From Klebsormidium nitens (taxonomy: Eukaryota; Plantae; Klebsormidiophyceae), in the NCBI GenBank assembly GCA_000708835.1, contig DF236978.1:1-64000 (forward strand): 64,000 bases of DNA. Direction: 5' to 3'. Below the pieces are notes generated by a model. The model had not been told where the DNA came from. It saw nothing but the letters and a program-made list of their open reading frames with translations, and did not search any database. The position numbers were made by a program, and so were the translations under genes. Positions 7,874 to 32,400 of this stretch are shown one piece after another (the stretch's first letter is position 1; each line of letters starts with the position of its first letter).

Positions 7874-10800
7874 ATGAGAATCTCCGACCTCTTCACGTCG
7901 GTCGGCATCAATGCCGCGCTCGTGTTGCTCTTCTTGTTCCTCTATTCCATATTCCGAGTGCAGTGGATAAATGCAAGAGTTTACTATGCGCGGCACTTTG
8001 TGCGGGACAAGGGGTGGGGAAAGCGGAGAGAGCTTGGCTTTAAAGAAGAGCTGAAAAGGCAGGCGAAAGGGATGCTGGGTTGGGTCCCAAGTGCAGTGAA
8101 GACCGCAATGAATGAAGATGAGCTGCTCAGAGTGGCGGGGGTGGATGCGGTGGTCTTCATGCGCATCTTCCGAACAGCGTAAGTCCCTCATGCAGTTAGA
8201 TATGTGGCCAGAGTCAAAGTTTGTTGCTGGCCGTCGTCCTTTGTGGTGCGCTGCCCTAGAGCTGCTAACTAGGCTGATGGGGTGGGTGGCACAAAGTCGA
8301 GATCCAAGCCACAGCAGTTGCTCAAGTTTCTTCCTATCCTCCTCTCAGAAACTAGCGTCAAAGATGGACAGCAATGCTGTATGAAAATGTTCTTCGTGCT
8401 TGGAGTCGATTCGAGTTGTGTCTTCCTGTGTCCTCCTGAAGGCAAGAGTTTCAAGTTCGTAATGTTGAACATTAGGATTTCATTGACAAGAAGCAGGTTG
8501 AACAATTGACAAGAAGCGAGTTTGACATCATTCATGCATGAAGGCTGTGCGTGATTCTCACTGCCCCTCTCCCATCGTGCAGTATACACCTATTTGCAGT
8601 TGCTTGCTTTGTGGGCTTGGTTGTTCTTCTCCCAATTAACGTCACCGACGAAGCTCTGGCAATAGATGCCCAGAGATACGGCAACTTTACGGTGGACGAG
8701 CTGGACACCCTCACGATTGCGAACGTTCAGAATGGATCTAAGAGGTACAGCCCACTTGCTCTCTGCTACACAGCTTCCCACAACCCCTGCAATCTGATGC
8801 TTGCTAGCACTGCCACCTCTCAGATGATAATTCATGTTGCCAAAGTCCATTGAAGTGCTCATGATTGGGACGCAAAGCTCTTGAACGGGAGTCTTGCTAA
8901 AGTGCGTCGTATTCCAGGCTGTGGGCCCACCTGATCGCTGTCTACTTCATCACGTTCTACACCTTTGCGCTGCTCTACCGCGAGTTTCGATCCATCGCGT
9001 ATCTTCGCCAGAGGTAAGTGGGTTCCCGACAATTGATTGCCCCGAAGGCTGTTGTTTAATTACAGGGGCCCGAGCAGCTTTTGCGGACATGGCGAAGTGC
9101 TATTCTCACACCTTGGAACAGCCGCCAATGGGCACAAAGGGCCTGCTTGTAAGGATCGTTTGCGTGGTGTTAGGAACACCTGCCAGCCGTCTCTGAGCTC
9201 TTCAAGAGATGAACGAGCCGATTCTAGAAAATATGGGCTCCCAACAGGTCCTTCAAAGTCGTAATCATCATACTTGTGAACCTGACGGCACCGCACTCAA
9301 GGGGAAACTTTTGTTCACCATTATGACATGGGTGGCAGGGGGTGAAGGTCGTGGGGTGAAGGTGCGATTGTAAAAGCCTTTGAACCATTGAAAGCTGTGC
9401 TGAATTTTTTTTGTGTCGGGGCACACAGACAGATTGCGGCCGCACGCCCCGCTCCAGACCAATTCACGGTGCTGGTCATCCACGTGCCCCGGCGCCAGCA
9501 CAAGAAGGACGGCGTCAGCCGGAGCGACATGATCGAGCGCTTCTTCAACAAGTACCACGCACTCACCACTCTTGTCAACCATCCAGTCTATCGGGTGAGC
9601 GACCTCTGGCCAGCCTCTCATACATTGTCAGAACCTCAAGTTAGAAGCTGCCGCTTCTCCTCTCCGATTTGTTAATTAGTCTGCAAACAGCTTCGGCCGA
9701 ACGCTTTTTGATTGGCCGGCTCACGGGTTCCTTGTCCAGCTTTTGCACCAACCTATCTCTTACACTTTCATTGCAACGCCTTGTTGGACCGTCGTTTCCG
9801 AGTAAGGAGCCGCCTGTGGTGCAGTCCATCCACATCGTGCGCCCCAAAGCTGCACCCACGGTTGTGTGTGTTGGAAATCTTGACGGCTTATTTCCCCGGA
9901 ATATGGGGCAAGCTTCCATTCTGGATTACTTTGGCGTAATGGGTCCTTCTTCGGTTGTTGATATACTGAAACTTCTTTGTTTGAAGGAGCTGCCTGATGG
10001 CGAGGAAGCCGAGCAGCCCATTACAAGGGCCGATGAATTCTTTCGAAAGGTCCACCGCCTGACGTACCACCTGTATCAACCAGTGTACCAGGTACGCTGT
10101 GTCATAACACTCAGCGTACACGTAGCTAGTCCTATGGATGCCGCTCAAGGCATAGCCTTGCAAGATTGAGCTGTCAGCGTCCGGTGCCCCTTGTCTATGA
10201 GCTCAAAAAAGTTCGTTACACTCTCGTTTGTTTCTGACTGGTGGTTTTTCGGTGGGTGTCGAGCTTTACCAAGTTTGGGTCTGAATTTACATTGGTTTGC
10301 AAGATACGCTTTCCAACAATTTGCTCTGACTGTGAGCGGCCATGTCCACGTCTCCCGTCTATTTGTCAGCTTCTTATGTGCTGTGACCCGACGTATTGCG
10401 CTGCCAATAACGGTCTTCTAGAGACTTCGTCGAGCTGATGATTAGCCTTGACTGCTTGTTCTCAGTCAGCTGTCAAGCGGCCGCTCCTCGCTCTGCATTG
10501 GCAACAATCTGTCATACCCCTGGCGTGCGTCACATTCGCCCTTTGGTCGTCAAACACACAGCCGCTCCCTGTACCTGGTCCTCTCGTCTCCCGATGCTCA
10601 CGAATTTGCCAGAAGTGCCCTGGCCTCTGATTCCATATTTGCCACTTCGTTTCGTTACTGCCCCATTCTTCTTCCCCGCGGAAAACGACCGTCCACCTCC
10701 GAGATCACGGGTCCCCATGTATAGCCGCTCATCCTTTCCGCTCCCGCTTGACCCCACCCCCCCGCTTAAAAAAACTCACTCGAAAAGGTTTAAGACCAGT

Positions 10801-17369: not shown

Positions 17370-20300
17370 TCATATGCGCCCGTTTCTCAGCCTTCGTCTT
17401 TGTCGGCTGAATTCGAGCAGCACCATGTGCGGGGCCGTGAGCGCCGCGAGCCCCACGAAGATGACCTGAACACTGGCCATCTCGAACGCCGCCACGTGGG
17501 ATGCCAAGATTGGGTGCTGCAAAAGGAACCTCGTCAGATGTTGCCCTTGAAAGGCACCTCCGTTGTCGCCAAACTCTCTTTCTTCGGAGAGCGCTGTACA
17601 CCTCCAAAGAGCGCTTTGGTTTCGCGGAGAGCGCGCACATTACCCTCCCTCAGTAAAGGGGCCACTAATCAGACGAATCCAATGACAGTTGGCGTGGTAG
17701 CAAGAGAAGATAAGTTGCCGCAAAAACTGGACAAGGGATAAGCACGGCGTGAAACCAGATTGAAGGTCAGACTAACACGTGTGTCTCTGGTCAGCGTCCA
17801 GTATTCACCAAGTGCCCCCCTTCTTACCTTGAGCAGCCCCGCAAAGACGGCGAGCGCCACCAGCAGCGTGACACCTGTCACCATCCCGGCCGCCTTGCCG
17901 ACGTAGCGCAGGTCCGCCAGGCTGGCGGGCGTGCTTTCGTCCGCGAAGAACGCGAGCGTATGGCGTAAAGAATGCAGCTGCACCGAAGCGGGAACTGTAA
18001 TCAGCTGCGTGTGTCTCCAGAACTGTCATGAAACGAATCATTGGCTTCGTGTTTATCCAGCTCAACGAATGGACGGATGCAGCTGCACCAGAGTCGTCGG
18101 AGCAAAGTTCAGGATTCGGAGCTGCCCCAAAGCTGCCTCGGAGACCCCCTCGCGCCCAAGCTGTTCAAGTTCGAAGGCTGCGAAGGTGCGCCGCCATATT
18201 GCCCAATACTGGAAGCTGCCAAAGCGCTGTCACGGTGATAATAGGAACCCCGCCTTTTCCAGCTCGGCCGAGGCAGAAACCTCACCCTAGAGAACCACAA
18301 ACACGACCAATACGTGGCCGTTAGGCGCATCTCGAAGTTGCTCGACAATCTGAAGTACTCAGCAGTCGATATTGGCCTAGTCGAAACCAGGCCTCACCGT
18401 ACAGAACGCGAGGAAGAAGCCCAGGAGGGGGGGCGCCAGCGTGCACCCCAGCCCCAGCAGCGCCATCTCTAGCCCGGCCGCGAGCCGCGACTCTCGAGTC
18501 AGACCCGGACCAGACGTCAGCTGTCCTAGTGTCTTCGATGACGTCAGCTCTTCCCGGGGTACGAGCTGCTCTCGAGCTGGGGAGCCCAAATGTGTGTCGG
18601 TGCGCGGCCCTAGGTAGCAGTAGAGGCTTGTGGCGGCGACTGCCAGCGCGGTGGGCAAGGCGAGGAGGGTGCAGAGGTGGGACACGTGGCTGGCCGCGAA
18701 TGGAGGAGCGAGGTGAGAGAAGAGGAGTGACGTCTGCAGGGAAGAGGGTCGTCAGCGACGGAAAGACGATGCCAAGCAGGGTCGTGATGAGACTAGGGCC
18801 ACTCACTTCATTCGACTTGGCGTTTGACTCTCAATCAAGAACATGTATCGAGTGGCTGGTTGCCGAGCTATCCTTCAGCAAGTTCGGAGTCAACACGGAG
18901 ATAAGGAGCACACAATAGCTGTCTGTACTTTGAAAAGTTGCCGGATTTGTGCAAGCAGATGCTTCACGCAGGGAGTCAAATACTTTGCAAAGCAGTAAAA
19001 TCTTAGGATCTCCTTCCAAACTTCCGCCTTTTGGAAGCTCAAATGAGCTGACAAAACGACAAAGCACAGCTCCGACAATGCACGGCTCTTCGATTCGTGC
19101 TTTCGTATGCATCTTCGGACCTGGTTATCTACACCAATGAGCTTGATTCGAAGCTAGGTCGGCTTTTGAGGGAACCTGTATCGGACGAAGTCGAAGGTCA
19201 GAACTTTTCGGCAACACTGTATGACAAACACAGGCACCTTCGTCTCACCTCCTGTTTGTGCAAAATGAAGGGCAGCGTAATGGGTCCCAGGCCTCGGGCT
19301 GCCACCTCTACCCAGTGCCACTGCCCCGGCAACAAGCCTTGTGCATCGTTGGTGCCAAAGTGCCAGGCGCTCGCGGCCAGCAGGCCCGCCAGAGAAGCGC
19401 CCGGGAAGTGGCACCACAGGAACACAACTGGAAGGCAAACGGGCGCTGTTCAGTTTCTGATAGGGACAGGCATTTCCTCAGCTGATCATGCAAAGAAGTC
19501 ATCCGCACTCTTTCGAGGAAAGGCTCAGCCTCGCAATGGCCGAAGGCTCGATTATGCACATCACAACGGATCGGTTCGAGAACCATGAAACACATAGGAC
19601 TTGGAAACTTTCGGCCTTCAGAAACGAGCACGCCCATCTAACTCCAAACTCCAGCTTTCCTAGTACTCTACCAAAGCAATCCTGATTTAGACGGAAGCTC
19701 GACGGGAGCTTGAAAACCTTGAGTTGTGAGCTTCTCTTGACTGAAGCAGAACCCCTTATGGCATTGACATGAACAACACCGCAAACTCTTAGAGCAGCTA
19801 GCCAGCTGACAATCTCCCCTGCGTGCAGCATTAGGGCCTGGGACTCCTCACCTAAGGCGGTGCATGCAGAGTAGGCCGCCACAAAGAGGGCGAGGTTCCA
19901 GGGCTGTGGCCAGGGCCAGGCCTGCTCGCGCATCAGCCCCTGAGCTGTGACCAGGTCCAGAGCACCGTGGGGGACGCCCAAAATGGCAACTCCTAAAGCC
20001 AAAATTGTTAACTGCAAATCAAGGTGTAACACAGGGGGTTAGGACGAGTCAACCGGCAGTGTTATTTTTCAAAGGAATGCAGCTAAGCTGCAGAGAATGC
20101 TTGTGCCGGCTGTAATCTTTTGGCGTGCTATGAGTTAAGGTGAATCAGGAAGCCAAATTCAATAGATGCATCTCATGATACCTCAGAGACTTGCTGATCT
20201 TCTTGTAGGAGGAGAAGGCTCAAGCAAGCGGCCTCACCTGTACAGTTGGGGACACGATTGCTGATCCCGTCAAATAACTGATCAAGAGCAAACCCGTGAC

Positions 20301-20912
20301 CCCAGCAAAAAACTTGGGGTGTATTCGCTGGGCTTTTCTGAGCAGTACCAGGGTCTCCTCAGTGCAAAATGTGCCTGGCTGCAACCCCCCCTCACGGTTG
20401 GCGCCTGCCGCTGCAGGCTCCAGATAAACTGCATGAGCAGCCGCCTTCGTGCAGCGCCGTTCTAATGTTCTCTGGTCACAATGTGCCGTTGCTAAGGACC
20501 GTAGAGCGGAGCCATCCCAGATTTGCTGTGCCTCTACTGTATTCACATTGCAAAGCTCTCTCTTTGTCGCCAACAAACCCCGCTTTTTCCAAGCCTGCCA
20601 CTTGGAGATTTTGCAAACAGTGGAGCCTGCAAATGAGTCCCTTGCTTCCAGATTCTCCCTTCCGTTGACATCCTCACTGAGACTGGGACCGCTCTGCTCA
20701 GGAACCACATTCTGCGGGTGTGTGCGTCTTCTGCAACCGTGACTCTGAAAATTCCTTTTTGTGGCTCCCCCTCCATGTAAGGGCTTCACAGCAAAGGGTC
20801 TGACGCTGTGGCCCAATGTCTCCTTGTAAGCCCTGCTGACGATCGACTCTTCCTGGGCAACACGAATGCTGGGCGTCCCTAATCTAGTTCTATGCAAGCT
20901 GAAGCTCGCCAT
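17370..20912 (-). CDS. blh: Brp/Blh family beta-carotene 15,15'-dioxygenase (retinal-forming), 548 aa with ~200-aa N-terminal extension
   Basis: Exons (minus) 20912-20238, 20011-19852, 19427-19249, 18733-18398, 17977-17828, 17516-17370 join in phase to 549 codons. Family motifs appear in the correct order: LGVPHGALD, SAWHFGTND, RGLGPITLP..H.ET..LF..L, PPLLGFFLAFCTLHSLRH, GLAALTAPHM. The protein is multi-pass hydrophobic. Confidence 0.9.
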
Positions 20913-21626
20913 GCCGATCCGTGAGCATCACATGCTGGAGACTCGACTGCATAGCAATCTCTTTGTTTACCATCCCCTTACTGTCTTGTCTTTTAGTAAG
21001 GACGGAGCAAACGAAGAGGACATTACTTGATGTTCCATGGCGGACGTAGCCGGGGAAGGAGAGCAGAAAGGAGAGAACTCAATAATCTCTTCTCCAGAGA
21101 ACAAACCAGAACTCTTTGACATCCCTTTGACGTTCAGATATCAACGAAAGCGCAGGCAGATCTTCCTCTCGCAACACTATTAGGTGGAACCTGCTGGATT
21201 GAGAAGGGTTCTTCCCAGTTGTCCCTGTGCGCAAGCCATTGGGTTATCGATCTTAATATGGCAATCTGCACTCAAGATGATGCCATTTGGCGCTTTTCGC
21301 CGCGGCGAAGCCTGACGAACCAGCCGCACCGTTGACTGCATGAGCGCCGCACAAAGCCTAGCGCAGTACTCTACACGGCCCTTGTGTACAATCGGGATTC
21401 CATGTACGCACTCGATTGCGTAGGTACGGTAGGAGTCGGGACAGGGTAGGCACCTAGGTACATCAAGGTTCAACTGCTCGGCCTGCGTGTACAAAGCACG
21501 GCGTACGATCATCAGCAGTGCAGTGTACAACTGCTTTTACCAACCTGAGCCGATTTCGATCTGAACCGTCGTCTCGGGATTGCATGCAGATTATGAACCG
21601 TCGATGCACCGGCGGAACCTCGGATC

Positions 21627-21638
21627 GACCACGTGGTC
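21627..21638. promoter_or_regulatory. Palindromic G-box (GACCACGTGGTC) between blh and rhodopsin
   Basis: Perfect 12-bp palindrome containing CCACGTGG, near the middle of the divergent intergenic region. Function is inferred only. Confidence 0.3.
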
Positions 21639-22507
21639 CGAGCTTTGAACGCCAGCTCCAGTGTCGGCCACTGCTCGAGCCAGGCTCCGACCAGTCGGCA
21701 TGTTTTGTGGTAGGCAACGAGGCAACGGCCCCGCGGCCAGCCTGGTGAGATGTGCTGATGCTCATTGACAACTCGACAACTGGCACACAACGTCTCATTT
21801 GAAGCAGACAAATGTCTGTCTGCATTATGAAAGAAACGTGGAGCGCAGCAAAAGGCACAGCTCATCGTCAAATTTACTGCCTGATCATTCATTTATCAGT
21901 GCATCTGAGAAGCCGGCTCCTTCTCTAGCTGCCGAGTCCAGCAGCTTGCGCTTCCACTTCATGCAGCCTTTCTACCTAGCATGAAGGGCACTTTGTGATG
22001 GGTGCTCACTGCTGGGTAGACCCTGTGTCTTCGTTTCTTGTAACCGTAAGCTGCACGGTCGAATGCCTGCCCCCTGAAGTTGATGGCAGTGTATTAAACA
22101 GCAAAGTGTCCATGAGATCGGTGTAAAGCCTGCTTCAACTCAACGCATCTTTCAGCTGCTGAGGCGGCTGTCACGGTCTTTCAACGGACTTTCATTTACC
22201 TGCAGGGAGTCACCGACTTTTAGTGCGAGTTATCGGGCCAGAGCTGATCCAAGCTCGACCAGAAACTTTACCCGATTAGGTCTCGATTACCAGTGCCAGA
22301 TCTGCATGCTTCAGTACACTGGCTGCCAGCAAAACTCTCCATCTTGACGACTGATCTAGTTTGATTTGACAGCACACTCTTACATAGCAACTCTCTGCAA
22401 AAAGCTTAAGTCGCCCACATCTGACAACCTTCCCCACATTCTCGCACTCGCCGCCAGTAGTACGTGACGGGCCAAGTCCAGAGCTAACGCGCAGCACCAC
22501 CGTCACC

Positions 22508-25284
22508 ATGGTGTACTCACACGCTGACGCCGCAGGGTGGACTCTGTACTGGATCACGTATGGCATCATGGCGGTAACCGCGCTCATCTTCTTTGCGATG
22601 TCACTACGGAGACCCATCCAGCAGCGCTCGCATCACTGTAAGCAAAGCTCCTCTATCACTCCCTGAATTTGTCGGATCCTTCCATGGTTTACTCAAAGAC
22701 TGACTTTAGGGGCTCAGAAAGACTTACTGGCAGCATTGTTGTCAGGTCAAATGCATGTGTTGTCTCTGGAACGCCGGTAAAATACCCCAGGATGTGCAAT
22801 TTGTAGGAGGGGGCAAGACGAAAAGGACCCCCAAGAGGATGAAGGTTCTCGGAAGGATCCTCATTCGAAGGTCTACATTGAAATAAGTGATGATTGTGGG
22901 CCTTCGTCATTGGACTCGTAGATTGAGTAGAATTGAGACGAAGTTTGGGCATGAAGAGACTTGGCTTTTGAAGCCTTGAAAACGATCAAGCTCAGGGTTT
23001 CTGAGCGGAGATTGTTGCGACTAATCAAAAACCTGTGTTGGATGCAGATACATCCTTCCTGATCGTTGCGATTGCTAGTCTTGCCTACTACGCCATGGTA
23101 AGAGACTTGAATCGTTGCATGAAACAAAAGTTTAGCGGAGACAGTCATTCGCAAATTAGAGGTTTGTTGTCTCACATTCTGAGTGGAAAGGGATTGTGGC
23201 AAGAAGCTTCGTCTTGAAGTTGTATCTAGGCAACCTGGCTGGCGCCTTCCTGGAGGCTTGATAGAGAGAGCAATGCATGCTCCTCTTCAGGCCAGCAAAC
23301 TGTTCTAAAGTTTACCAAGGATCGCAGTTGAATCCGATCCTGTGGACTGCAAGCAAAGCGAAACTGACGTACTGTTGTCAGTCTGTCCAAGCCTCGCCTT
23401 AGAACTCCAATCTCGTTTCGAATTCACAAGCTGTAGTGCGCGGGAGATTCAGTGGGGCCTTCAGAGTTCAAAGCGAGGTTGCAAGGACTAGACTCAAGCA
23501 TAGTCATTGGCCAAGATAATGACGCAGCGAGCTCAAGCCGAGTCTACACTAAGAGCAACCTTCGCTTTTTCGCCGGCCGGCTCGCTAATCCAACTCGACG
23601 CCCATGCTTTCTGCAGGCTTCACAAGGCGGCAACACCAGGATCCGCGTTTACCAAGGACCGGCTGATTCATACCGTCAGATCTTCTGGGCGCGCTACGTG
23701 GACTGGTTCTTCACGACGCCGCTGCTCCTGCTGGACCTCGTTCTGCTGTCCAACCTGTCCAAGCTCCGAATCGCCGCCATCATGGTTGCCGACATCTTCA
23801 TGATCCTGACCGGGTTGTTTGGCGCCGTGGAGGCGCGCAGCAACAAGTGGGGCTGGTTCGTCTTCGGCTGCATTTTCATGCTCTACATCTTCTACGAGCT
23901 GCTGGTCAACGTCCGGAAGGGAGCGTATGCTCGTGGCGGCCAGCACGGTGGGTGTGCGACCAAGTCCTTATCTTCGGCAGGACGTTTATCTGACTGCCTG
24001 GTTCGATGGTTCACGTTTCTTACCACAGTGCCCGGTACAGTTGGGCCACTGTCCTCCAATATCTCAACCTGCTTGGACCAGAAATGGAAGAACGATATCA
24101 GGCGCCGGAGAGTGGGTCGACTTTTTCGCTTCAAAAGCTTCTGGAACGAACGCGTTCTGCACTAGCATGAAGGGGATGACGGGGGTCAGTATCAGAGCCA
24201 AGTCGTTCGAGGGATCTTCAATGCAGTGCGTCACACCGAAATTGGTTTGCTGTGCAGGCATGCTGTACAGCGTCCTTCTGGTGTGGCTGCTCATCCTGTG
24301 GGTTCAATACCCCGTTGTATGGGGCCTGGCAGAGGGCTCCAGCACCGTATCCTCCGACACTGAGGTAAGCGATCCACACAGCGACTACTGCCGAAGCACT
24401 TGCCAGCGTTCTAATAAATACGGACAGCACTTGCCTCTTGCTCGAGCGTCTCCTAGGATGTTGTTTCGATGTTGATTCACGGAGAACCGTTTGCTTTCTC
24501 TTCTGACGGGATGGATTTCATTCACGTACTCAGATCGCGGGCCCCAGTCTCAGAAAGATGGATCCTTTCCGAGCAACGCGTTGCCAGGACTTTTCCAAGT
24601 CGGTTTAGCCAAGCCACAACTGTAGACAAGCGTTTTTTCGTACCCCATTTTGCAGATTGCTTGGTACGCCGCTCTCGACATCTGCGCCAAGTGCGTCTTC
24701 GGCTTCATCCTTCTCCTGGGCATCGAGTCTATCGACCGCAAGAGAGCCGCCACGGGCTCGTCCAACAAACCGCCGATGCCAGCTGGCACGACCAGGTACG
24801 CTTGCAGTAGAGAGTTTGACCATATGGTGGCCGTCCTCTTTCCCTAAGTGTCCTTTATTGCTTCTTAGATTTGGCGGGGAATGTGCCGGCAGAATAAAAG
24901 CGGCCCTGAAGCTTTGCGTTAAGCTGCTTCACGTCAAATTCTTCATTGCATCAAACCACCTGATCAACCAACCGAACCTTCAACGCTTCACCTCCCCGCA
25001 CGTGAATTTTCTATGAGGGCGTCGACGCCTGATTCCTGGGCGCAAGTAAGAGGGCTTGTAAGCGCATTGTATGCTTCCATTTGTTGTCGAGAGCTGTGTT
25101 TCCAGTGTACCCTCGTAAGAATTGCGGCTACAGAGTCTCGGGTGTCTATGTTCGGATCGGCAAAGACAAGTGAGTCGACTGTTCTCCTGCTGAAGCTGTC
25201 GGCTGGTCGCCTGTGCCTTGCAGGACGGGAGCATCTGCGGCGCCCGCCGCGGCCGCCCCTGAGGTTGTCCGCGACGTTGTCTAA
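22508..25284 (+). CDS. Microbial (type 1) rhodopsin, DTD-motif light-driven proton pump, 272 aa
   Basis: Exons 22508-22637, 23048-23097, 23617-23947, 24258-24364, 24656-24795, 25224-25284 join in phase to 273 codons. Helix C WARYVDWFFTTPLLLLD, helix D ADIFMILTG, helix F LWVQYPVVW, loop AEG...DTE, helix G LDICAKCVFG containing the Schiff-base Lys. Confidence 0.95.
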
Positions 25285-29473: not shown

Positions 29474-32400
29474 ATGGCGCTGGCAAGGCGAGCAGCCTCA
29501 TGTGGCCTCTGTGGCCGCGGTGCTCTTCTGGGTCAGCATTATGAAGCCTCCGGCAGCAATCAGCAGCAGCAACAACCACGTCTTGCGCGCTTTTCAGACT
29601 CATTAAGGGGCAAAGAAAAGTCTGGCAAGATACGGGTACACGCTGGTGAATCAGTAAGCCGCACATGGGCACAGTCGAACATCCGGGCCACTCTAGCTCA
29701 GGATAGGCCTACAACCGCAGCGTCTGATGGTTCGGCCCTTTTAGAAAAGTTTGCAGCACCCAAGGGGCAGGCAGCGGCCTCCCCCCCTAGCGTCCCTGTC
29801 ACAGCAAAGAAGCCGCCATGGCTGAGGCAAAGGGCACCGCAGGGGGAGAAGTTCGAGGAGCTGAAGGATTCTCTCCGCTCTCTCAAGCTTAATACAGTAA
29901 GTTTGGAATGGTGATCCTCCATTTCACTTTATGCAGAGATCTGATGGGGGGTGGTTCGACGTGTAGCTTCATGGATCATATGATGGAAGATGTAGCGCTA
30001 CTTGGTCACTTTTCTGAGATCAGCTTATAAAAGATTTGCTGTGCCAGATAGTGAATCATCTACTTCCCCTCAACAGGATGGGGCCTTTCCAAAAACAATT
30101 CTTCCTCATCGGGGATCCTTTTCCTGTATGTCGTTGTCACATTTCTTTCCTGATGTGTATGTCCTAGTCAGGCCCCCTCAATAGCGCTTTCCAAGAAGAA
30201 CAGCTTGTTTCAGTTTTCTCTTCTGCCCTCTCTGACTTTCATCGAAAATGTATCACGCGTATCATCTTGTAGAGCAGACCTCGCGGCCCGTACGGAAGCA
30301 CTGCAAATTGGTCAGCCAGTAATCTCCAATCGAGATCCTTTAAGTCTCGCGCTCCAGCCCCCACATTTGTCACCTGGAAGTCCATCAAGAAGTGTTGTGA
30401 ATAATCTTGAAACAGTTTCCTGGCAATCAACGATGGGGTAGAGCAGACTGACGAGTTATGATTGGTCAGGTGTGTGAGGAGGCGCAGTGCCCCAACATTG
30501 GGGAGTGCTGGAACGGGGGCGGCGGCGCCGGCGGCGACTCGAAGCACCACAAGGCGACTGCCACCATCATGCTGCTGGGGGACACCTGCACTAGGGGCTG
30601 CAGGTTCTGCGCTGTCAACACCGCCAGGATCCCCCCACCCCCAGATCCAATGGAGCCGGAGAACACCGCAAGAGCGATCGCGGAGTGGGGGTGAGCTTGA
30701 GTCTTGTTTCTTCTTGCCAAGGTGCTCGTAAGACAAGCTTGTGACTGGTTGCTATTCTCCTGCAGTACGAAGTTCTGTTGTTTTTGGGCTTTGCTTTCAA
30801 GTTCAGTGGATGATACTGATTTGCCTGAACAGTGAGTGTGTGTATGCAGGAGTCTTGTTAAGTCCTTGAAGATGCTGAATGAATACGCCTGTCAGGGTAA
30901 TGGCGTCTTAATCATCCAAGCTTTCTAATGAATACCAGGGACACACAAAACTTTTTCAAATGATCTGCGCTGTATAGTAACTTTCAAAGGACATTTGCGC
31001 AGGGTGGGCTATGTTGTGCTAACGAGCGTTGACCGAGACGATCTTCCAGATGGGGGCAGCGAGCACTTTGCGCGGACAGTACGCACACTGAAGGTGAGTC
31101 AGAAAGTCTGTGATGAGAGTTGACACAGTGAAAGAGTGACTGTGACAGCCCATGGGAATCATCATGGACAGTCGGCACTACAGCTAATTTGCAACCCTTT
31201 TCAAAGAGGGTTGTATCTTCCAACAACAGCGCATTGCGATCCTTTTCATAGAGTGTTGTGATTTCAAACAACGGCGAATCTGCGATCCTTTTCGTACAGT
31301 CTTGTGTCTCTTTCACGAAGTGTCGCGTATTCCTGGGTGCAGAGCATCACATCTTTGGTGCCTGCTTGAGCAATCTAAGCAACGCTTCAAGATCGTGGCC
31401 AAACCACTGGCATCACCTTGCCAATTCAACAGCATGACGTGCCTCGCACGCAAGCTACGTTATGTTACCAAGGCAGTGATGTCCTCTGACGTCATTACTA
31501 CGGGCTATCTACAGGCTCTCGCTCCCGAGATCTTGGTGGAGTGCCTGACGCCTGACTTCCGAGGGGACTGGGAGGCAGTGCGGCACCTCGCTGTCTCGGG
31601 CCTGGACGTCTTTGCCCACAACATTGAGACAGTGAAGCGGCTGCAACGCATCGTCCGGGATCCGAGAGCAACGTAAGCCCCTGGATGTCTCAGCAGCTTT
31701 CCGTCGACACGCTTGAGCTTTTGAGCTTCATATCAAGATCTTCTGGTAGGATGCGACTGAGGGAGGTCAATCAATGGAACTTCGACTTCCACTTACAAGT
31801 ACGACCTTCCCAGGGCCTCTTGTAACTGCATTCGCCTTTACAGGGAATGGCCTGTAAACTTACGGTGCTTCATGAACAGCACATGAAGCTGTTCAAAACA
31901 GCTTGCTGGTTCAATCCTCGATGTCTGTGCTAACTGTCTCCTCATCAAACTGGCAGAACTGGGGCAAAAGAGCCACGGCTACCGCTGCTTGAAAGCTGTG
32001 TCGAATCTACGGCAGCCTCGTCGCAGTACATTGCGCTGGCCTATTCTCTTCATCGCACAAGAATCTTACAGATTTTCCTTGGAGCAGATGCCCAGTCCTT
32101 TCGCTATTGTTGTTCCCAGGTACGATCAGTCGATGGAGGTGCTCCGGGTGGCCAAAGGGTCCAAAGCCGGCCTTGTGACCAAGAGCAGCATTATGCTCGG
32201 CCTCGGGGAGAAGGACGACGAAGTGTTGCAGACCATGAAAGACCTGCGGGATGCTGGGGTGGATATTCTCACCTTTGGGCAGTACCTGCAGGTGAGGCGG
32301 TGTGAATGGACGCTGTGTTTTATTGATACCTTCCGTGCTCTGAACTTGGGTGACAACGTCAAGTGATTTCTGCTCCTCTGTTGAAAGGGGTATCGCAAGG

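Follow-up and report, generated by a model that had tools for sequence, protein, structure and literature searches.

The first 64 kb of scaffold DF236978.1 of the streptophyte green alga Klebsormidium nitens (GCA_000708835.1), referred to here as the window, contain the single, already annotated Blh gene of this alga, whose predicted product is a beta-carotene 15,15'-dioxygenase of the Brp/Blh family. We found that exon 1 of this gene is coding, and the protein sequence suggests a eukaryote-specific part, from residue 1 to about residue 195, placed in front of a bacterial-type core. Our preferred reading, to which we give a probability of roughly 45%, is that a leader of a few tens of residues acts as an organellar presequence, likely directed to the plastid, and is followed by a tail retained on the enzyme.

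The annotated product at the locus has 548 amino acids (aa), the length also reached by a sequence-only reading of this DNA, with a coding sequence (CDS) corresponding to window positions 20912-17370 (GCA_000708835.1) and a hit to PF15461 (BCD). The identical protein is UniProt A0A1Y1HL64, which appears as a 548-aa entry with its domain at 231-535 in a published Blh table (PMC10016063). Both the 548-aa model and the late start of the domain are therefore already public and novelty is limited; what is described here is a real feature in a known gene model and marks a lineage-specific form of an established enzyme family. TargetP and iPSORT were applied to all the K. nitens models in the genome paper (PMC4052687), and our literature searches found no relevant paper on the K. 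nitens Blh and its extension. Family and homology searches were run exon by exon, and statements about the whole protein come from the precomputed Pfam hit and the table in PMC10016063.

Exon 1 is coding and belongs to the Blh gene

Translation of positions 20238-20912 on the reverse strand yields 225 aa beginning MASFSLHRTRLGTPSIRVAQ (MASFSL), in agreement with the sequence-only reading. The stop-to-stop open reading frame (ORF; 20220-20912) encodes 230 aa and extends 5 codons beyond the cag|gtgagg donor at 20238/20237. Met1 is the sole methionine of exon 1 and has an in-frame TGA 5 codons upstream. In shuffled windows, open stretches of at least 225 codons occurred 0.3 times per 64 kb.

Relatives of exon 1 were P0001, from the Logan genomic contig L001, and P0002, from the Joint Genome Institute (JGI) metagenome contig L002. 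The first was the only relative returned by a word-index protein search, and the two together were the only ones returned by a profile search of the whole library. That library holds 1.84 billion representatives, and the search found no other relatives of the extension in it; because the annotated 548-aa K. nitens protein itself was also not returned, its silence on relatives carries less weight. The frame is also open in L001 (233 aa, 59% identical) and in L002 (213 aa). By comparison, when sets of 180 substitutions, the number by which the window differs from L001, were drawn at random, the frame stayed open in 79 of 20,000 (0.4%).

At the DNA level, exon 1 could be aligned with L001 by blastn over its full length, at 73% identity and together with 138 nt of upstream leader, with one indel of 3 nt inside the exon. 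Throughout the comparison of the window with L001 the exons were alignable and the introns were not. Against L001, exon 1 had a ratio of nonsynonymous to synonymous divergence (dN/dS) of 0.41; its two shifted frames gave 0.88 and 0.95, and exons 2-6 lay at 0-0.28. The ratio remained below 0.6 in each quarter of exon 1, and synonymous divergence was even along the exon (0.55-0.71). The protein starts with MASFS or MASFT in each of the three species, an in-frame stop precedes that start by 3-13 codons, and the frame closes 2-7 codons past a conserved VQ|GT donor, the cag|gtgagg sequence of which is kept in L001. Exon 1 is coding. Given this closure of the frame just after the donor in three species and the lack of a start codon in exon 2, the candidate explanation of exon 1 as a separate small gene was rejected.

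The remainder of the gene model was also consistent. All five Blh introns have GT..AG ends, the boundaries of exons 2-6 match the edges of conservation in the DNA alignment with L001, and all six exons are present in order in L002. Exon 2 has an in-frame TAA just 5' of its acceptor and no in-frame ATG ahead of His240. The extension is mandatory for the enzyme, because the ATG at 20912 is the sole in-frame start upstream of the first histidine ligand. An Rfam scan of the window gave no matches.

Codon usage sets exon 1 apart from the exons of the Blh core, with a GC content at third codon positions (GC3) of 0.56 versus 0.68-0.82. A separate observation was made on the lipoyl synthase gene of the window, whose N-terminal extension (29474-29914) has a GC3 of 0.53, while the conserved exons of the window have values of 0.72-0.86. 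N-terminal extensions in the K. nitens genome seem to be without the usual codon bias.

A bacterial-type core behind the extension

Behind exon 1, the matches to TIGR03753 are collinear, with exon 2 covering positions 2-44 (E 1.7e-5, 24.6 bits), exon 3 positions 50-109 (E 4.5e-11, 42.8 bits) and exon 6 positions 238-259 (22.9 bits). The same three exons also match PF15461, exon 2 at positions 2-42, and exons 4 and 5, which gave no profile match alone, align collinearly to bacterial Blh. The four conserved histidines are all present, in PHGALD of exon 2 (His240, as numbered by the sequence-only reading), in AWHFG of exon 3, and two in HSLRH of exon 5, and all are kept in L001 and L002. We take the PHG, WHFG and H-x3-H histidines to be the iron ligands proposed for bacterial Blh. 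Every Blh exon contains hydropathy windows of at least 1.5. The earlier idea of a prokaryote-type enzyme is supported by this collinear core with its complete set of histidines.

For comparison, the exon 3 alignment was used to scan genomes of bacteria and archaea; the bacterial set retrieved (L004-L010) comes from assemblies of Acetobacteraceae and Rhodospirillales and from a single one of Myxococcota. In the closest bacterial Blh proteins found, closeness being biased by this motif-driven retrieval, ~35-60 residues lie between plausible starts and PHG, which fits the earlier statement that prokaryotic proteins reach this motif within a few tens of residues. Likewise, the published table has the prokaryotic Blh domain starting mostly at residues 35-60 (PMC10016063). 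The algal protein resembles bacterial and archaeal Blh (TIGR03753, PF15461) in its collinear profile match and in the motifs PHGALD, WHFG, H-x3-H and T-x-PH, and its exon 3 is 41-50% identical to the most similar bacterial Blh found (L004-L009), with FLAASAWHFG shared. It differs from them in ~195 extra N-terminal aa, in a loop in exon 4 and in five spliceosomal introns.

The first membrane helix suggests where the bacterial-type part begins. All members of L004-L010 have a hydrophobic helix ahead of the PHG helix, in the same place as algal residues 201-221. In L004 the sequence ...LLPPGVQ is followed by 13 residues and PHG, and in the alga ...IVSPTVQ| is followed by 13 residues and PHG across the junction of exons 1 and 2; L005 is similar, with LGAQ, 13 residues and PHG. 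BLAST gave no significant match between exon 1 and the ORFs of bacterial Blh, so the algal and bacterial helices are matched by position, hydropathy and spacing and not by sequence score. Judged in this way, the algal helix probably goes back to the ancestor of this Blh subfamily and would lie outside the extension.

Three further observations concern the core and its origin. The exon 4 loop (about 18480-18610) is hydrophilic, ~45-55 aa long and not in the bacterial relatives, and both its length and its sequence vary among the three algae; by sequence comparison, it is a second eukaryote-specific insertion in Blh. One of the bacterial Blh contigs among L004-L009 is labeled as a Lobaria lichen metagenome, and the taxa retrieved, by a motif-driven route, may hint at a terrestrial alphaproteobacterial donor. 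When the exon 3 alignment was run against JGI metagenomes, a single marginal fragment, L003, was returned and set aside.

Organization of the extension

A division of the extension into a leader, a fast-evolving stretch and a conserved block (Table 1) was reached in agreement by the three-way alignment, the profile search, the dN/dS blocks and an AlphaFold2 model. The single strongly hydrophobic stretch of exon 1 is at residues 201-221; hydropathy places its start at 201, where the sequence-only reading had put it at about 202.

In the leader, MASF is invariant in the three species and residues 1-20 are conserved in the three-way alignment. A Gly-Gly(-Gly) run at 47-49 is also kept in all three. 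Residues 20-140 diverge fast and have predicted local distance difference test (pLDDT) values below 40. Within them, codons 60-130 have a dN/dS of 0.57 against L001, and the stretch at ~60-140 is saturated and unalignable with L002, with pLDDT of 26-33. Residues 141-200, by contrast with this drift, have a dN/dS of 0.32 and invariant columns in the three-species alignment, and the exon 1 profile aligns with P0002 at positions 143-226 only (E 3e-12). The conserved blocks of the extension are residues 108-127 and 145-200.

The AlphaFold2 model of exon 1, built on the three-sequence alignment, has a mean pLDDT of 34.7, and residues 1-191 are all below 50. Apart from the membrane helix, the only helices that it predicts, at low confidence, are at 151-168 and 185-197. 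The basic residues of RKAQRIHPK sit N-terminal to helix 201-221. Because residues ~145-200 are conserved across the three species and include these low-confidence helices, this segment looks like part of the mature protein. Pfam and NCBIfam scans of exon 1 gave no match, nor did a sequence search against solved structures.

These results separate what holds from what does not in the earlier claim of a ~200-aa extension resembling a plastid transit peptide. There is indeed an extension, it is coding, and it belongs to the eukaryotic gene alone; its first tens of residues look broadly presequence-like. The resemblance is not supported for the whole length, which measures ~195 aa before a probably ancestral helix and includes the conserved segment at 145-200.

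Table 1. Position of the Blh gene parts, of the segments of its N-terminal extension and of neighboring features in the window
Feature	Position	Strand	Description
Blh exon 1	20238..20912	-	225 codons; entire N-terminal extension and first hydrophobic helix
Leader, residues 1-60	20733..20912	-	MASFS start, basic, few acidic residues
Fast-evolving stretch, residues 61-140	20493..20732	-	No confident predicted fold
Conserved block, residues 141-200	20313..20492	-	Ends in basic juxtamembrane helix TEETLVLLRKAQRIHPK
Hydrophobic helix "TM0", residues 201-221	20250..20312	-	FFAGVTGLLLISYLTGSAIV; hydropathy maximum of exon 1
Blh intron 1	20012..20237	-	GTGAGG...TTGCAG, phase 0; unalignable with L001, both flanking exons alignable
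Blh exon 2	19852..20011	-	PHGALD, first family motif; His240 at 19969-19967 (15th codon)
Blh exon 3	19249..19427	-	WHFG histidine
Blh exon 4	18398..18733	-	Holds variable loop of ~45-55 aa
Blh exon 5	17828..17977	-	HSLRH, third and fourth histidines; conservation with L001 starts at acceptor ggtgcag|CTGCAT
Blh exon 6	17370..17516	-	LTAPH motif and stop codon; annotated CDS end at 17370
Conserved leader 5' of Blh start	20913..21050	-	blastn match to L001, 138 nt beyond ATG
Opsin gene	22508..25284	+	272 aa, bacteriorhodopsin-like; divergent from Blh

A possible plastid presequence at the N-terminus

At most residues ~1-60 can be a transit peptide, and their composition is moderately transit-peptide-like. 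The sequence-only reading had described them as rich in Ser, Thr and Arg and poor in acidic residues. The charge was as described, with 9 Arg/Lys and 3 acidic residues, all Glu (21, 22 and 31), and neither Asp nor Glu in residues 1-20, while the enrichment in Ser and Thr proved modest (18%). There is no signal-peptide core, the mean Kyte-Doolittle hydropathy of residues 6-25 being -0.27. The MA start, the depletion of acidic residues, the net positive charge and the absence of a hydrophobic core are features of transit peptides that are also typical of mitochondrial presequences. The N-terminal domain MASFSLHRTRLGTP is rich in Ser, Leu and Thr and ends in Pro, and an N-terminal domain ending in Pro has been described for Arabidopsis transit peptides, the mean length of which is 53.6 aa, with 19.3% Ser and 6.9% Thr (PMC2291561). 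The first 40-60 residues could alone meet this usual length.

Our proposal is that the alga added ~195 residues, all encoded by exon 1, ahead of a bacterial-type Blh core that would begin with helix 201-221 and continue with the PHG helix and the three remaining histidine ligands. The first ~40-60 residues, a basic leader starting with MA, would most likely be a cleavable organellar presequence, and the chloroplast would be its likely destination because beta-carotene is located there; in green plants this carotenoid is made and kept in plastids. The middle would serve as a rapidly evolving linker. The conserved basic juxtamembrane helix would stay attached to the mature enzyme and face the stroma or the cytoplasm, as expected from the "positive-inside" arrangement. 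Plastid import, cleavage, membrane orientation and enzymatic activity are all predicted here from sequence.

Comparison with other eukaryotic Blh proteins places this extension in context. In the table of Rius et al. 2023 (PMC10016063), these proteins are stand-alone or fused domains, several of which have extra N-terminal sequence as in K. nitens: the domain begins at residue 77 in Guillardia theta, at 67 in Hanusia and at 136-138 in chytrids, and over all the eukaryotes other than K. nitens the starts range from 8 to 138. The start of K. nitens, at 231, is the latest of the stand-alone entries, and the alga is the sole Viridiplantae entry in the dereplicated list; that paper is silent on both the extension and targeting. 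Long N-terminal regions do occur in other organelle-targeted K. nitens proteins, namely the entry in the CrtB sheet (PF00494, probably phytoene synthase), with its domain from 178, the entry in the lycopene-cyclase sheet, from 126 (PMC10016063), and the lipoyl synthase of the window, with ~120 aa ahead of its conserved part.

The carotenoid cleavage dioxygenases (CCDs) of plants (RPE65/CCD, PF03055: NCED, CCD4, CCD7 and CCD8) cleave carotenoids and offer a functional analogy only. They are soluble or peripheral beta-propeller proteins of an unrelated fold and family, while Blh is a probable multi-pass membrane protein. They enter plastids by means of N-terminal transit peptides and their apocarotenoid products exit the plastid; their targeting was shown by experiment, whereas that of the K. 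nitens Blh is predicted.

Several points count against a plastid presequence. Over the first 54 aa, both the window and L001 have 11% Ser and 7-11% Thr, and L002 has 11% Ser and 5.6% Thr, to be set against ~19% Ser in a reference set that is from Arabidopsis and not from Klebsormidium; Asp and Glu make up 5.6%, with the Glu residues at 21, 22 and 31, and the L002 orthologue has a Glu at 10. No clear cleavage motif of the VRA|A type was seen on inspection of the leader. The whole extension, at ~195-225 aa, is 3-4 times as long as the average transit peptide (53.6 aa), which speaks against a transit peptide of that full extent. The first transmembrane helix, 200 aa into the protein and preceded by basic residues, would make an equally good signal anchor for the endoplasmic reticulum (ER). 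Chytrid fungi, which have no plastid, carry ~90 extra N-terminal residues on their Blh, so that an extension per se is no plastid signal. Upstream ATGs overlap the start codon, which leaves in doubt both where the mRNA begins and how efficiently this start is used. To these is added the reduced weight of the library search noted above.

The extension might instead be a cytosol-facing, largely unstructured regulatory or interaction tail, with helix 201-221 as a signal anchor into the ER or another non-plastid membrane near the opsin encoded next to Blh. We hold this as a serious alternative, although well short of an even chance. The lack of a confident fold and of a family or structure match over residues 1-191 would suit such a tail, as would conserved blocks that spread beyond the N-terminus (108-127 and 145-200), the basic residues ahead of the first helix, the extended Blh of the plastid-free chytrids, the merely moderate likeness of the leader to transit peptides, and the absence of a presequence on the opsin, whose gene diverges from the same 1.6-kb intergenic region. 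A Blh outside the plastid, however, would have no obvious substrate pool, beta-carotene being plastidial, and the MA start, the acid-free first 20 residues and the net positive charge have the look of an organellar presequence. The invariance of MASF ahead of 100 drifting residues would fit a recognition signal placed at the very end of the chain.

The other explanations appear much less probable. The 548-aa model would overstate the extension if exon 1 held an unrecognized intron or if there were an alternative first exon. The public models were made by Augustus with mapped transcripts (PMC4052687), neither protein search gave a spliced, transcript-derived protein with exon 1, upstream ATGs crowd the start, and the GC3 of exon 1 is near the non-coding level; yet the entire exon aligns with L001 with one 3-nt indel, which true introns do not, and its low dN/dS in each quarter with even synonymous divergence, its open frame in three genomes with the same start and upstream in-frame stop, the inability of exon 2 to start translation ahead of His240 and the bacterial spacing reproduced across the exon 1-2 junction make a shorter N-terminus improbable. 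A mitochondrial or dual-targeting role of the leader is very unlikely. The N-terminus is basic and acid-poor, the presequence properties of both organelles overlap, and S-[RK]-x-[YQF] near 27-29 loosely resembles an R-3 site, but the putative processing site is not kept in L001, Gly12 and Pro14 break the amphipathic helix that would be expected, and no carotenoid substrate is known in green-algal mitochondria. Just as little credit is given to nearly all 195 aa being a long bipartite cleavable signal, with a stromal part and a part for sorting inside the plastid. Unusually long bipartite signals for the envelope or thylakoid do exist in plants, the entire region is without a confident fold and the Gly-Gly(-Gly) run is common to the three species; against this, the length exceeds the transit-peptide mean severalfold, and the strongest conservation and the sole predicted helices lie at 145-200, adjoining the membrane helix, as is typical of mature sequence.

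The neighboring opsin gene and the shared upstream region

The gene that diverges from Blh encodes P0003, "Bacteriorhodopsin-like protein [Klebsormidium nitens]" (100% identity), and its best match among solved structures is the Coccomyxa rhodopsin 6GYH. The opsin is the presumed user of the retinal that Blh would make. As stated by the sequence-only reading, it is without a transit peptide: the protein begins directly at helix A, with no N-terminal extension, and its orthologues do likewise. The voltage indicator 2Photron was built on a K. nitens rhodopsin, KnR, described as a proton pump (bioRxiv 10.1101/2024.11.15.623698); KnR may correspond to the opsin of the window.

The two genes stand head-to-head with ~1.6 kb between them in all three contigs (window 20912-22508; L001 ~8548-10001; L002 ~8160-9632), and the downstream RSN1/OSCA gene is kept in the window and L002. 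In prokaryotic rhodopsin/blh clusters the opsin gene also adjoins that of the retinal-forming enzyme, as in the alga; the prokaryotic genes form an operon, whereas the opsin and Blh of K. nitens are a divergent, intron-bearing eukaryotic pair.

Within the conserved leader 5' of the Blh start there are upstream ATGs at -61, -40, -21 and -16 (20913-20973), of which L001 shares those at -61, -40 and -16, and L002 those at -40 and -16. The ATGs at -61, -40 and -16 share a frame that crosses the main ATG (an upstream ORF of 27 codons), and the one at -21 is an ATG-TGA start-stop. Translation of Blh may be regulated through them; alternatively, the mRNA may begin 3' of them. Separately, a 93-nt intergenic block at 21565-21656, which contains GCATGCAATCCCGAGA, is 82% identical to L001 between flanks that are unalignable, and has no match in L002. 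It is a candidate for a shared cis-regulatory element or an untranslated exon.

Implications for retinal synthesis in green algae

Taken as a whole, the locus may tell of a bacterial-type Blh that was acquired by the alga and given a new plastid presequence and a retained stromal tail, and that would make retinal in the chloroplast for a proton-pumping rhodopsin outside of it, the two genes lying head-to-head around a shared control region. We put this full scenario forward tentatively and consider it somewhat doubtful in its entirety. If true, it would be the first defined route of retinal synthesis in the green lineage, and a rare case of plastid retargeting of a transferred integral-membrane enzyme.

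Were Blh plastidial, retinal would have to exit the plastid, an implication already drawn by the sequence-only reading. Carotenoid cleavage in the plastid followed by export of the product is routine in plants, and because export is ordinary for plant apocarotenoids, the exit of retinal would be no surprising consequence.

The synthesis of retinal for green-algal rhodopsins is poorly defined. In K. nitens, which among algae is closely related to land plants, the gene of a candidate enzyme adjoins that of an opsin, so a single gene pair is enough to put the question to the test. Should the leader prove to be a transit peptide, it would show how a bacterial-type membrane enzyme was linked to the carotenoid pool of the plastid; otherwise, the conserved tail would point to a regulatory or anchoring function.

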